This document shows, piece by piece, positions 4,565-17,820 of a DNA stretch of 64,000 nucleotides (its first letter is position 1; each line of letters begins with the position of its first letter). The position numbers and the translations under genes were made by a program. The stretch spans positions 124,001 to 188,000 of the IMG/VR virus record IMGVR_UViG_3300032782_000001. The stretch is one strand, 5' to 3'. A model generated the notes under the pieces. The model was not told the DNA's origin and searched no databases. It saw only the letters and a list, made by a program, of their open reading frames with translations.

Positions 4565-4897
4565 ATGAAGCCTGATCAGATCATTTCGCTCACCGAGAAA
4601 TACGAAGAAGCTTTCCGGCGCGTCGGTACCAGGCCTAAGGAGATCGACAGGAGCATTACGCCTCCTGGTATGCAGAAGGCATGCGAACACGCAATGTGGA
4701 TGCTCCCTAAGATCCGGGAGATCCTCCAGGAGGGAAAGCATGCGAAAGCTGAAAGGTGGTTTTGTTTCGTACAGAGCGTTATGTGGCAGGCAGGATTCTT
4801 CAGCATCAATGATATGCGTGATCACAACCGGACCCCCGAAGAGGAAAAACCTGTTAGCCCGAATCCGGATGCCTGTTCTAATATCCTTGAAGATTAG
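4565..4897 (+). CDS. Hypothetical protein
   Basis: 110-aa ORF preceded by gTAATGT-N5-ATG. Confidence 0.6.
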   Translation: MKPDQIISLTEKYEEAFRRVGTRPKEIDRSITPPGMQKACEHAMWMLPKIREILQEGKHAKAERWFCFVQSVMWQAGFFSINDMRDHNRTPEEEKPVSPNPDACSNILED

Positions 4898-5325
4898 CTG
4901 TCCATTACCTCCGTCGCAATCTTGGACATGTCAGCGTTAGCCTCAAGCAGGACCCACAAGACGCGGGCATCTGCCGCTACCATAAATTTCTCGTGTCGCC
5001 AATCCTGGCAGTACCAGTCATAACCTTCGTAAGTTTTCTTTCGTTCTCCTTGATGGAGACGGGTCCTACAAGGACGTACTTGCAGCATTACATGTCCGTT
5101 ACTAAGTTCAGGGAGAACTTCGAAATGGAGCATGGCGATAGTCGTGGAAGTCGGGTTTGAAGAATAATCTTTGTGCTCGGATGTTGACCATTTCACCCAA
5201 AAACGGTTACCACCACTGCAATGAATATGGATATGGTAGGAACAAAATTCAACGGATGCTTTTAGCCTGTCAAATTCTTGGATCAGGTGAGAAATTACTG
5301 AGTCATGTAGCTCACTGAACATCAT
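4894..5325 (-). CDS. Hypothetical protein with VMDS C-terminal tag
   Basis: Ends TEVMDS*; start set at 5325 from gTATTAT-N5-ATG, which also avoids overlap with the divergent RF gene. Confidence 0.6.
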   Translation of the reverse strand: MMFSELHDSVISHLIQEFDRLKASVEFCSYHIHIHCSGGNRFWVKWSTSEHKDYSSNPTSTTIAMLHFEVLPELSNGHVMLQVRPCRTRLHQGERKKTYEGYDWYCQDWRHEKFMVAADARVLWVLLEANADMSKIATEVMDS

Positions 5326-5374
5326 TCCAGATAATACGTTCAGACTTTGCTGTAAAATGAATCCGGAGGTTTCC

Positions 5375-6041
5375 ATGTCAGTTATTGTAGAGATCAGGGC
5401 CGCCGAAGGCGGAGATGACGCCAAACTCCTCGTTGAGGATCAACTCCGAGTCTATGCGCGCCGCGCGGTTCGGAGGGGTCTTTGACCTTGAAGTAACCGA
5501 ACGCCTTCCGGGCCTCGTCGTCTTCCGGTTAACCGGTAAAGGTGCAGACGAAGCTTGGAAGGATGAAGCCGGTGGACACCGCTGGCAAAGGATTCCCCCA
5601 ACCGAAAAAAGGGGTCGAGTCCAAACGAGCACTGTGACAGTGGCAGTTTTGCCAGAGCCCACAGAAGCTCAGATCCGGATCGATCCGAGGGACATAGAAG
5701 CGTCCACTACTCGTGGATCTGGTCCTGGTGGTCAAAATCGAAATAAAGTGGAAACGTGTGTCATTTTGAAGCACATCCCTACGGGGCTAACTGTTCGTTG
5801 TGAATCTGAGAGATCACAACATCAGAATCGAGCTATTGCCCTGGCACTCCTCCGGGCCAGATTATGGGACGCTGCACAGAAGCAGGCCATTGGAGCTCGT
5901 GATGATAACCGGAAACGTCAAATTGGATCCGGAATGCGTGGAGACAAGAGAAGAACAATTCGATGCCAGGATGGGATAGTCAACGATCACTTGACTGGAA
6001 GACACTGGAACTTCAAAGAATATGAGCGCGGTGACTGGTAA
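5375..6041 (+). CDS. Peptide chain release factor (RF1-like, lacks domain 1), expressed via +1 frameshift at CTT-TGA 5480-5485; about 221 aa
   Basis: SD GGAGGT 5365-70; frame 0 MSVIVEIRAAEGGDDA...RRGL*; +1 frame continues DLEV...GGHRWQRIPPTEKRGRVQTS...GPGGQNRNK...ERSQHQNR. Confidence 0.88.
5472..5486 (+). promoter_or_regulatory. prfB-type programmed +1 frameshift cassette
   Basis: GGAGG-GGT-CTT-TGA-C: internal SD, 3-nt spacer, CUU-UGA-C, as in bacterial prfB. Confidence 0.88.
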
Positions 6042-7750: not shown

Positions 7751-8032
7751 ATGGATAGGAAACTGGAGATCGGATCTGCCGTGGTATTCATCACGGCAGA
7801 GCGTGTGAAGGTTAACGCTCTCATCGAATACGTCCACCATAGTGGTAGCGTAGACGCTGAAGAGCACAGGCAGAAGTATGGAAACTGGCCGTGCGTGAAT
7901 TTGATGTTCCTGTCGCCGGATCCCAACAAGGTGGATCAGCATGGCAGGCAGAAGGAACGCGCCTCGTCAGTTTCTCACGGCAGTGTCCAGGGGACTCCTC
8001 AGGGTTACTGTTGGCTTTGGCCTGACGAGTAA
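7751..8032 (+). CDS. Hypothetical protein
   Basis: 93-aa ORF ending CWLWPDE; purine-rich leader. Confidence 0.6.
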   Translation: MDRKLEIGSAVVFITAERVKVNALIEYVHHSGSVDAEEHRQKYGNWPCVNLMFLSPDPNKVDQHGRQKERASSVSHGSVQGTPQGYCWLWPDE

Positions 8033-8102
8033 TCTTCCCGCCTTCGGTCGGTACCCAAAAGGCGCCGATGACCGGAGGTTCCGACGCCGCGCAGGGCGAG
8101 CT

Positions 8103-8834
8103 TCAAATGCCGGTGAGTTCGCACCACCGGTCTATCACCATTTGAGCGTATGCAATGGATGGCATTCCGTAGGCACCCAGAGAAAAGGCATCGTTTACTT
8201 CAACAACAAGTGTCTTTCCTTCCGACGTGACTCCGAGGTCCAGAGAATAAGCCACAGGCGCGCTTTTAAACGCCAGTACACATTTTTGCGCAATTTCAAA
8301 ATCCGGATATTTCGTGAAGTCACCTCGATAATGACGACAGTTCACAATCAGTCCTCGATGAATGAACAGTCTATATTCAGCCACGAAGTCCACCACATCA
8401 GAGGCTAAGATTTCGAATTCATCCGGGAATGAAGCCGTCTTGATAAGATCCCGGATTGCGCCACTCGTTACAAACCCTGTGAACGCTTTACCACTTTTGA
8501 GTGGCTTGATGAACATGTGATGATTATTTTCGAGACGCTCCCTAACATATTTCATGTTGGTTTCCCACATATGTCGACCATAAAATTCGCGAATTTCTTC
8601 GACAGGTCCGTGATCTAATGTAGGTTGCACAATTCCAAGTCTATCCAGAGCTCGACGCACAGGGCCGATCCATCCATGAACTAACGTCTCTTTGCGGAGT
8701 TCTAGTGAATCGATTTCCTCGGCCGTGAAAGGAATTGTTTCTATACCAAGCATATAACATCCATACCACAGGGAAAAAGCGGTCTCATTAATGAACTCAC
8801 CGTTTTTCTTCTGGATGTATGCGAGATCAATCAT
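8103..8834 (-). CDS. ATP-grasp domain protein (R2K/DUF4343-like)
   Basis: FIKP...KAFTG, EYRLF, YSLDLG, VEVNDAFSLGAYG. Confidence 0.8.
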   Translation of the reverse strand: MIDLAYIQKKNGEFINETAFSLWYGCYMLGIETIPFTAEEIDSLELRKETLVHGWIGPVRRALDRLGIVQPTLDHGPVEEIREFYGRHMWETNMKYVRERLENNHHMFIKPLKSGKAFTGFVTSGAIRDLIKTASFPDEFEILASDVVDFVAEYRLFIHRGLIVNCRHYRGDFTKYPDFEIAQKCVLAFKSAPVAYSLDLGVTSEGKTLVVEVNDAFSLGAYGMPSIAYAQMVIDRWCELTGI

Positions 8835-17432: not shown

Positions 17433-17806
17433 GGGCCTGATCGGCTTCGACTGGGGAAGAAAGAACGATCTGCGTGCAGGCGGCGCTCGATCCGCCATAA
17501 CCAATCGAGCCGACACAGCTGCCAACGACAACGGCGCCCTCCGCATCGCGGCCTAAAAAACCGCGCGGATGTCTTCCCGGCGAAACTGCTTCCAGTAACC
17601 GGATGAAGGCACGAACCCAAGAGGAAGCTGGCCGTGGGAGTAACCCTCCTTTTATCCCGACGCCTCAGCCGGGAAGGCGAGATCAAGTCTAGGCTGACAG
17701 TGCGGAAAGACGCGCAAACTCAGTCGCAGGGGATACGGCGACTACGCACGTGAACGAGGGTTGTTTGGACAACTTCAGGACGCGGGTTCGATTCCCGCCA
17801 GGTCCA
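17433..17806 (+). ncRNA. ssrA: tmRNA, tag (A)ANDNGALRIAA
   Basis: GGGCCTG/CAGGTCC-A acceptor with G3-U70; 5' GA..GGCTTCGAC; T-arm GCGGG-TTCGATT-CCCGC; tag ORF 17521-17556. Confidence 0.95.
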
Positions 17807-17820
17807 CAAGGTGTTTGGAA

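Follow-up and report, generated by a model that had tools for sequence, protein, structure and literature searches.

A putative RF1-derived release factor gene lacking domain 1 and interrupted by a prfB-type +1 frameshift cassette

The locus described here raises the question whether a class-I release factor other than RF2 is made by a frameshift of the prfB type and, if so, to what such a frameshift responds. In prfB an SD-like sequence 3 nt before CTTT, the stop and a C right after it promote +1 slippage of tRNA-Leu at a slow stop (PMC12421855). The same arrangement had been pointed out, in a sequence-only reading, within a 64,000-nucleotide stretch of viral DNA. This whole stretch, called the window in the following, is part of the 436-kb record IMGVR_UViG_3300032782_000001, which stems from a single metagenome assembly.

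Direct reading confirmed the proposed gene start. An SD sequence GGAGG (5365..5369, plus strand) is located 5 nt upstream of an ATG at 5375, which opens a frame of 36 codons (ORF0, 5375..5482, plus strand). These specify the first strand of domain 2 together with its helix alpha5. The translation begins with EIRAAEGGDDAKLLV and holds the sequence EIRAAEGGDDA, with the EIR motif 5 codons into ORF0 (3-6 codons in relatives). At its 3' end ORF0 reads CGG AGG GGT CTT, the last codon being Leu; next come TGA (5483-5485) and a C (5486). The cassette GGAGG-GGT-CTT-TGA-C was found as claimed and comprises the 15 nt from 5472 to 5486. It is composed of an internal SD-like GGAGG (5472..5476), presumed to stimulate frameshifting and separated from CTT by 3 nt (GGT), the slippery CTT_T (5480..5483), where the P-site tRNA-Leu is proposed to re-pair from CUU to UUU, and the gate stop TGA with its 3' C (5483..5486), which is a weak termination context. 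A single copy of GGAGGNNNCTTTGAC is present in the 64-kb window, and none appeared in 100 shuffles. What remains of the factor lies in the +1 frame, as had been stated: ORF1 (5484..6041, plus strand) starts with GAC at 5484 and is open over 185 codons to the TAA at 6039-6041. It encodes the remainder of domain 2 as well as domains 3 and 4, including the tripeptide 'anticodon' PPT (5595..5603) and the GGQ peptidyl-tRNA hydrolysis motif within SGPGGQ (5727..5735), the latter detected by translation and by profile and structure-sequence matches. Past the gate the 0 frame has a single codon before it runs into a TGA, with a TAA 19 codons on, and it shows no homology.

Thus, the window exhibits the characteristic elements of a prfB-type site, i.e. 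GGAGG with a 3-nt spacer, CTT_T before the stop, UGA as the stop and a 3' C. The location is a different one. The gate of an SPF-type RF2 is found in domain 1 at about codon 26. Here it is codon 37, in the loop that follows helix alpha5 of domain 2, and the factor is of the PPT type without domain 1, which supports the earlier statement that a prfB-type cassette is present at a site unlike that of prfB. A second in-frame TGA, to which attention had also been drawn, exists two codons past the gate (5489..5491), but a role for it is not indicated. It is kept in only 11 of 78 relatives, a frequency equal to the expectation from CTT codon usage, and we regard it as incidental. It arises from the codons GAC CTT GAA, which specify Asp-Leu-Glu in the +1 frame. 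Upstream of the gene the plus strand has a gap of 477 nt (4898-5374), which is covered only by a candidate ORF of 176 aa on the minus strand (4894-5424). An Rfam search of this gap gave no match, and a promoter and terminator scan revealed nothing exceeding chance.

The two pieces were searched separately against protein profiles. ORF0 matches positions 101-134 of Pfam PCRF (E 9e-6) and positions 105-138 of the NCBIfam prfA model, and ORF1 matches PCRF positions 153-194 and the whole RF-1 domain (E 2e-28). These are consecutive parts of one profile, indicating one release factor split over two frames. The highest NCBIfam score was obtained for prfA (183 bits), followed by prfB (120), prfH (79) and ArfB (41). 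All four scores are below the respective cut-offs because domains 2-4 alone are present: 183 versus 423 bits for RF1 (TIGR00019, the two pieces covering model positions 113-325), 79 versus 166.65 bits for PrfH (TIGR03072) and 40.6 versus 100 bits for ArfB (NF006718). ArfB consists of a GGQ domain and a C-terminal tail and does not have a domain for codon reading, whereas the window protein has domains 2 and 4. The two motifs of RF1, P-x-T and GGQ, were both found (PPT and GGQ at the coordinates given above). With the sequences of solved structures as targets the values were 139 bits for RF1, 81 for RF2 and 52 for PrfH. No domain 1 is encoded upstream of the window gene, and the relatives all begin 3-6 codons before EIRAAEGG.

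For the fold we used an AF2 model of a naturally uninterrupted homolog (L222:384-1040), the alignment being built from separate pieces. This model (pLDDT 92) resembles ribosome-bound RF1 with a TM of 0.91-0.92 and 2 A over the full length, compared to a TM of 0.82-0.87 for RF2 and 0.67 for PrfH. The frameshift junction maps to a loop of the model that connects helix 11-31 with strand 35-42, and judging from the model this loop can tolerate the residues R-R-x-L/D imposed by the cassette. By its sequence and by the predicted fold of the uninterrupted homolog the factor is to be classed as RF1-derived and not as RF2 or PrfH. The prfA best match and the fold of the homolog also support the assignment as an RF1-type factor lacking domain 1 made in the sequence-only reading. 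The product is therefore described here as a probable class-I release factor of 221 residues, RF1-derived and without domain 1 (the RF3/L11-stalk domain), an assessment that includes its origin by +1 frameshifting and the regulation discussed below. An RF1 deprived of domain 1 was reported to be active in peptide release, without interaction with RF3 (PMC1586002).

The stop-codon reading head of the window factor, GGHRWQRIPPTEKRGRVQTS, is close to the RF1 head in the structure-sequence comparison, and the RF1-type residues Q of HRWQR and T of QTS are kept. Instead of the His of GRxHTS, which is universal in RF1 and RF2, Gln is found in the window and in most relatives. The Thr of the RF1 tripeptide P-x-T is held to discriminate the first two bases of the stop codon. 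Among the best 120 proteins of the family the tripeptide is PPN in 50, PPT in 44, PPG in 6 and PPS in 5, besides others, whereas all 69 of the 69 canonical prfA loci have P-x-T with a variable middle residue. As far as these sequences tell, the pattern conserved in the family is P-P-x and not P-x-T. The use of P-x-T as a mark of RF1 thus holds for the PPT of the window but is a weak guide in a family in which N is as common as T. As the Thr is lost in half of the family, RF1-like specificity is an assumption, and the variable third residue leaves the codons read by the factor uncertain.

Relatives of the gene were collected from IMG/VR, GTDB genomes, JGI metagenomes and GenBank phages using peptide baits including WQRIPPTE, and all loci (labelled L with a number) were scanned by one script. 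The family comprises at least 109 distinct genes. The counts given in the following refer to distinct sequences, not to independent lineages, and those derived from DNA over-represent PPT members because WQRIPPTE was among the baits. Among the matches listed, a +1 shift is required in 87 of the 109 distinct genes, and all 87 have CTT as the codon preceding the stop. At exactly the codon used in the window a CTT-stop +1 site is found in 84 of the 109 genes listed, so that the objection that homologs might be uninterrupted at this position did not hold. The gate stop of the 87 frameshift-type genes listed is TGA in 59, TAG in 27 and TAA in one, and the base following it is C in 69. The commonest arrangement upstream is GGAGG with a 3-nt spacer (41 of 78 relatives). 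Conservation of SD-N3-CTTTGAC, suggested as a check, was observed in many of the homologs, while between a quarter and a third of the relatives have UAG as the gate.

The conservation concerns the nucleotides. CTTT is invariant in 87 of 87 genes, while among the other Leu codons of these genes only 15% are CTT (log10 P about -72). Arg-Arg preceding the site is encoded by CGG-AGG in 39 of 45 cases versus about 1% expected. The information content of the third base reaches 1.3 bits in CGG, 0.6 in AGG and 2.0 in CTT compared to 0.01-0.3 at neighbouring third positions. In about 100 genes the nucleotides of the cassette are thus under strong selection.

Furthermore, 109 of the best 120 database proteins begin downstream of the N-terminal motif, and no more than 2 lack an interruption. 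The +1-frame signatures F-D/E, F-S/R and F-N/K in these proteins imply TGA as the gate in 80, TAG in 12 and TAA in 2 (n=94). Together, DNA loci and protein signatures give a TAG share of 13-31% in the family. In a tree of the C-terminal 160 residues, well-supported branches require at least 5 exchanges between TGA and TAG, and parsimony gives about 16; such an exchange was seen even in pairs that are about 90% identical. We found no covariation of the gate stop with the tripeptide, the H/Q residue or the gene's own terminator.

The cassette is not confined to one position. It is located at codon 41 in L026 and L062 (CTT TGA C, ten codons downstream of the usual site) and at codon 47 in L029 (CTT TAG C, sixteen codons downstream), and these three positions indicate that it arose more than once. 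A further 18 of the 109 genes listed have no frameshift but one or two in-frame TGA or TAG codons, all confined to 30-45 codons after the EIR motif. Judging from their sequences, these genes look like localised readthrough gates and not like genes with ordinary code-4 Trp codons. A reading of the TGAs as code-4 Trp is unlikely, given their confinement to codons 30-45 and the Trp of the invariant HRWQR, which is always TGG; it is also disfavoured by the neighbouring genes of these loci, which read well in code 11. A comparison of codes by ORF density on loci of 4-12 kb is too crude for code assignment. In-frame stops were noted in L012, L018, L025, L035-L040, L043, L044, L047, L063, L064 and L138 as well as in L188, L189, L238, L262, L276 and L277; L038 and L040 each have one TGA plus one TAG in frame, and in L046 a CTT TAG C shift is accompanied by an in-frame TGA. 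Uninterrupted genes amount to 3 of the 109 among the matches listed. One of these, L222:384-1040, has retained GGAGG-TGT-CTT, and a single T in the T run distinguishes it from the cassette. Its gate may have been lost recently, or this 6-kb contig may contain a homopolymer error.

One group of explanations would do away with a frameshift altogether, namely decoding of UGA in frame by tRNA(UCA), a pseudogene or assembly error, or synthesis of ORF0 and ORF1 as two polypeptides. Two tRNA(UCA) genes 9.6 kb downstream of the gene are in line with the first of these, the origin of the window sequence from a single metagenome assembly with the second, and the last would suit the practice of gene callers and NCBI, which annotate ORF1 alone. 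Against decoding in frame stand the TGA and TAA that follow the gate in the 0 frame and the lack of homology there. The same interruption was found in 87 distinct genes from many samples, and 31 of these 87 frameshift-type genes have no possible start codon (ATG, GTG or TTG) for ORF1. ORF0, moreover, aligns with the ORF0 of the relatives as a conserved part of one folded domain. The conservation of the cassette and the missing ORF1 starts exclude assembly error, pseudogene and two separate genes for practical purposes, and we consider this whole group of explanations very improbable. A programmed +1 frameshift, on the other hand, very probably takes place at this site, as judged from the conserved sequence and the analogy to prfB.

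In phages the mini release factor gene is often found inside tRNA arrays, e.g. with 19 tRNAs in L002, 24 in L009 and 15 in L007; arrays of 11-24 tRNA genes around the gene were noted in L002, L007, L009, L021, L026, L017 and L031. A tmRNA gene adjoins it in L006 and L029. Published huge-phage genomes, which are not annotated, also carry the gene, either with the CTT TGA cassette (LR745208) or with in-frame stops (LR745206 and LR756502). ARAGORN predicted a tRNA with the four-base anticodon (taag) in L003:401-478 and a tRNA(CUA) in L035:4695-4766, the latter 1.7 kb downstream of a mini release factor gene with two in-frame TGAs.

The window itself contains a tmRNA (17433-17809, tag ANDNGALRIAA), a tRNA-Ile(UAU) (10863-10937) and two different tRNA(UCA) genes (15122-15198 and 15223-15296, with the discriminators U and G), located 9.6 kb downstream of the factor gene. 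The tRNA(UCA) genes are possible UGA suppressors. Family-A DNA polymerase, DnaB, RecA, a sigma factor, DnaJ and HNH and GIY-YIG nucleases are encoded in the window as well; tmRNA, tRNAs and release factor form a small translation tool-kit within this region of replication genes. The window reads as standard code, with 89% coding in code 11. Of its 85 genes 42 end in TGA, the most frequent stop codon there despite the two tRNA(UCA) genes. A genome-wide recoding of TGA was rejected for the window because of the 89% coding in code 11 and because no gene is convincingly split by TGA. No aminoacyl-tRNA synthetase (including TrpRS) was found among the window ORFs scanned, and RtcB was absent from the window ORFs checked and from the bacterial loci L272-L274. 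We found no conserved neighbour gene, no match in a PADLOC search for defence systems and no dedicated PHROG family, the only candidate there being a full-length RF-like family of unknown function.

The factor had been called a phage factor, and the relatives in huge phages agree with this. It is not specific for phages, because chromosomal copies exist in bacteria. Myxococcota chromosomes carry members of the family of which the downstream ORF alone is annotated as release factor. In Minicystis rosea (L272, CP016211, locus 7898-8567) a CTT-TGA-C gate is located at the same codon with CGGAGT-GGG upstream; the annotation lists the ORF0 of 37 aa as a separate gene and the ORF1 of 188 aa as 'peptide chain release factor 1'. 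In a bacterial genome of 73% GC the gene adjoins mraZ/rsmH and aromatic amino-acid genes and shows GGAGG-GGT and CTT-TGA-C at the same codon. The chromosomal copies in bacteria with the same cassette bear the labels L272, L273 and L274. Structural or hallmark phage genes were not found in the 64-kb window, which is assigned to a phage by its IMG/VR classification and by the relatives.

By analogy to prfB, ribosomes would start at the ATG at 5375 and read 36 codons until CUU occupies the P site and UGA-C the A site, where they would either terminate or slip. Termination by host RF2 would yield a dead-end peptide of 36 aa. In the case of slippage the tRNA-Leu would move from CUU to UUU, helped by pairing of the internal GGAGG with the anti-SD of the 16S rRNA three bases upstream; GAC would then be read and the factor completed. 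As one and the same paused ribosome may either terminate or slip, the two outcomes compete, and the output is expected to increase when UGA termination is slow and to decrease when it is efficient. Because the cis elements are the same as in prfB, synthesis of the factor inversely to termination at UGA-C, i.e. to RF2 activity, is the best-supported reading. A dependence of the frameshift on RF2 seems rather likely on the grounds of this analogy. Sensing of RF2 is, however, not the general logic of the family, because close relatives with the same head use UAG. Unlike prfB, an RF1-type head combined with a UGA gate would give no feedback by the product, which is a point against a simple transfer of the prfB scheme. 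If the tRNA(UCA) genes of the window suppress UGA, they would compete with RF2 and with slippage and would send ribosomes into the dead-end 0 frame. Taken together, we regard it as probable that a factor derived from RF1 and devoid of domain 1 is produced via a +1 frameshift, with an output that tracks termination failure.

As to the function, cross-sensing of RF2, an altered stop-codon specificity and a role in rescue had been put forward and each of them may apply. The product might be an auxiliary terminator made on demand, independent of RF3 and belonging to the phage tool-kit together with tRNAs and tmRNA, so that it would be supplied when the termination capacity of the host drops; we give this interpretation slightly less than an even chance. 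More tentatively, the members in huge phages and in some bacteria might together form a class of class-I release factors made on demand that has so far escaped recognition, with a UGA or UAG gate 30-47 codons after EIR that would be passed by +1 frameshifting in most members and by readthrough in others, and with a P-P-x head that may read UAG and UGA and would thereby make every gate autoregulatory.

The last point can also be seen as an explanation of its own. A relaxed P-P-x head would read UGA as well as UAG/UAA, and the factor would act on its own gate in the manner of RF2 in prfB, no matter which stop is found there. TGA and TAG replace each other as the gate in close relatives whose head is unchanged (at least 5 forced exchanges, about 16 by parsimony), and TAA, which is read by both host release factors, is nearly absent as a gate (1 of 87 loci, 2 of 94 proteins). 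Replacement of the RF1 Thr by N, G, S or A in more than half of the best 120 relatives and of the universal His of GRxHTS by Gln in the window and most relatives point in the same direction. The tripeptide of the window is nevertheless PPT, the other RF1-type residues of the head are kept, and no covariation between tripeptide and gate codon was seen. We know of no natural omnipotent release factor in bacteria. On balance true autoregulation appears rather unlikely to us, though it is the strongest of the rival explanations. Alternatively it might be that the cassette is an attenuator which sets a low constant yield or a delay irrespective of release factor levels, the stop merely acting as a slow A-site codon required for slippage. 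TGA and TAG appear to be interchangeable, as such a device would allow, and the preference for the weak context (stop followed by C) looks as if high slippage alone had been selected. In prfB, by contrast, termination and slippage compete at the same ribosome (PMC12421855), which makes a dependence on the release factor level hard to avoid, and in the 18 relatives with in-frame stops the yield likewise depends on termination failure. A fixed-ratio attenuator is therefore improbable, and an output that follows termination failure remains the reading which we prefer.

With prfB the window gene shares the SD-like purine run, the 3-nt spacer, CTT_T, the in-frame stop and the 3' C in a gene for a class-I release factor. 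It differs in being RF1-derived, in the position of the gate (codon 37 in domain 2 versus about codon 26 in domain 1), in the use of TAG in 13-31% of the family versus 0 of 8,164 prfB motifs (where the stop is UGA and rarely UAA), and in the lack of product feedback to be expected for the UGA version if its specificity is RF1-like. The occurrence of the cassette at three positions in the family argues for convergence and not for inheritance from prfB. A survey of 12,753 genomes revealed no programmed frameshift in prfA and TAG in none of the 8,164 prfB motifs (Prince et al. 2025), prfB alone is listed in the GeneTack survey, and a counterpart of RF2 recoding for UAG and RF1 was unknown to Atkins et al. 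2016 (PMC5009743), the sole viral example being of eRF1 type in giant viruses of amoebae. This example, the release factor gene of Mimivirus and Megavirus, also requires a frameshift and readthrough at stops (PMC3521657; PMC5009743), but the eRF1 type is eukaryotic/archaeal and belongs to an unrelated protein family and a different host translation system.

PrfH (RF-H), whose gene is paired with RtcB and located downstream of it, likewise lacks domain 1 and consists of about 200 residues with domains 2-4 and GGQ (PMC1586002). The window factor differs from it in scores (52 bits for PrfH versus 139 for RF1, TM 0.67 versus 0.91), in the lack of an RtcB neighbour among the ORFs and loci checked and in its head, which is RF1-like and not PrfH-like; no frameshift is reported for PrfH genes. 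Canonical RF1 (prfA) is the best match in sequence and structure, sharing GxHRxQRxPxTE..GRxxTS, GGQ and domains 2-4, but it has domain 1, P-x-T and a cut-off of 423 bits, and programmed frameshifting is reported to be absent from it. RF1 and RF2 are encoded by huge phages (Al-Shayeb 2020), and Jade phages carry RF1 in a 'code-change module' (Borges 2021). These factors are comparable to ours as release factors of large phages accompanied by tRNAs, a possible UGA suppressor and tmRNA; neither truncation nor a frameshift is mentioned for them, whereas the window factor gene is itself gated. In a code-change module a suppressor tRNA, TrpRS and the release factor are neighbours upstream of recoded genes. 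The window has its two tRNA(UCA) genes at a distance of 9.6 kb; no TrpRS was seen among the ORFs scanned, and the 64 kb show no sign of TGA recoding. We found no prior description of a frameshifted mini release factor family in full-text searches of the literature available without subscription.

The RF2 frameshift is a textbook example and prfB has hitherto been the only release factor gene regulated by recoding. The family described here is a second release factor family with the same cassette, evolved independently at three positions, with UGA or UAG as the gate and with putative readthrough variants. It tests the generality of the principle that termination failure is sensed by recoding, and its natural UAG and UGA versions can be used to ask what determines the efficiency of frameshifting. 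If the reading as an on-demand class is true, the members gated by UAG would provide the prfB loop with its first natural counterpart of the RF1 type. Furthermore, the specificity of a factor without domain 1 and with an unusual reading head is directly testable. The analysis also exposes hundreds of mis-annotated genes of which databases hold the downstream ORF alone. For the biology of huge phages it means that a regulated termination factor joins their tool-kits of tRNAs and tmRNA.
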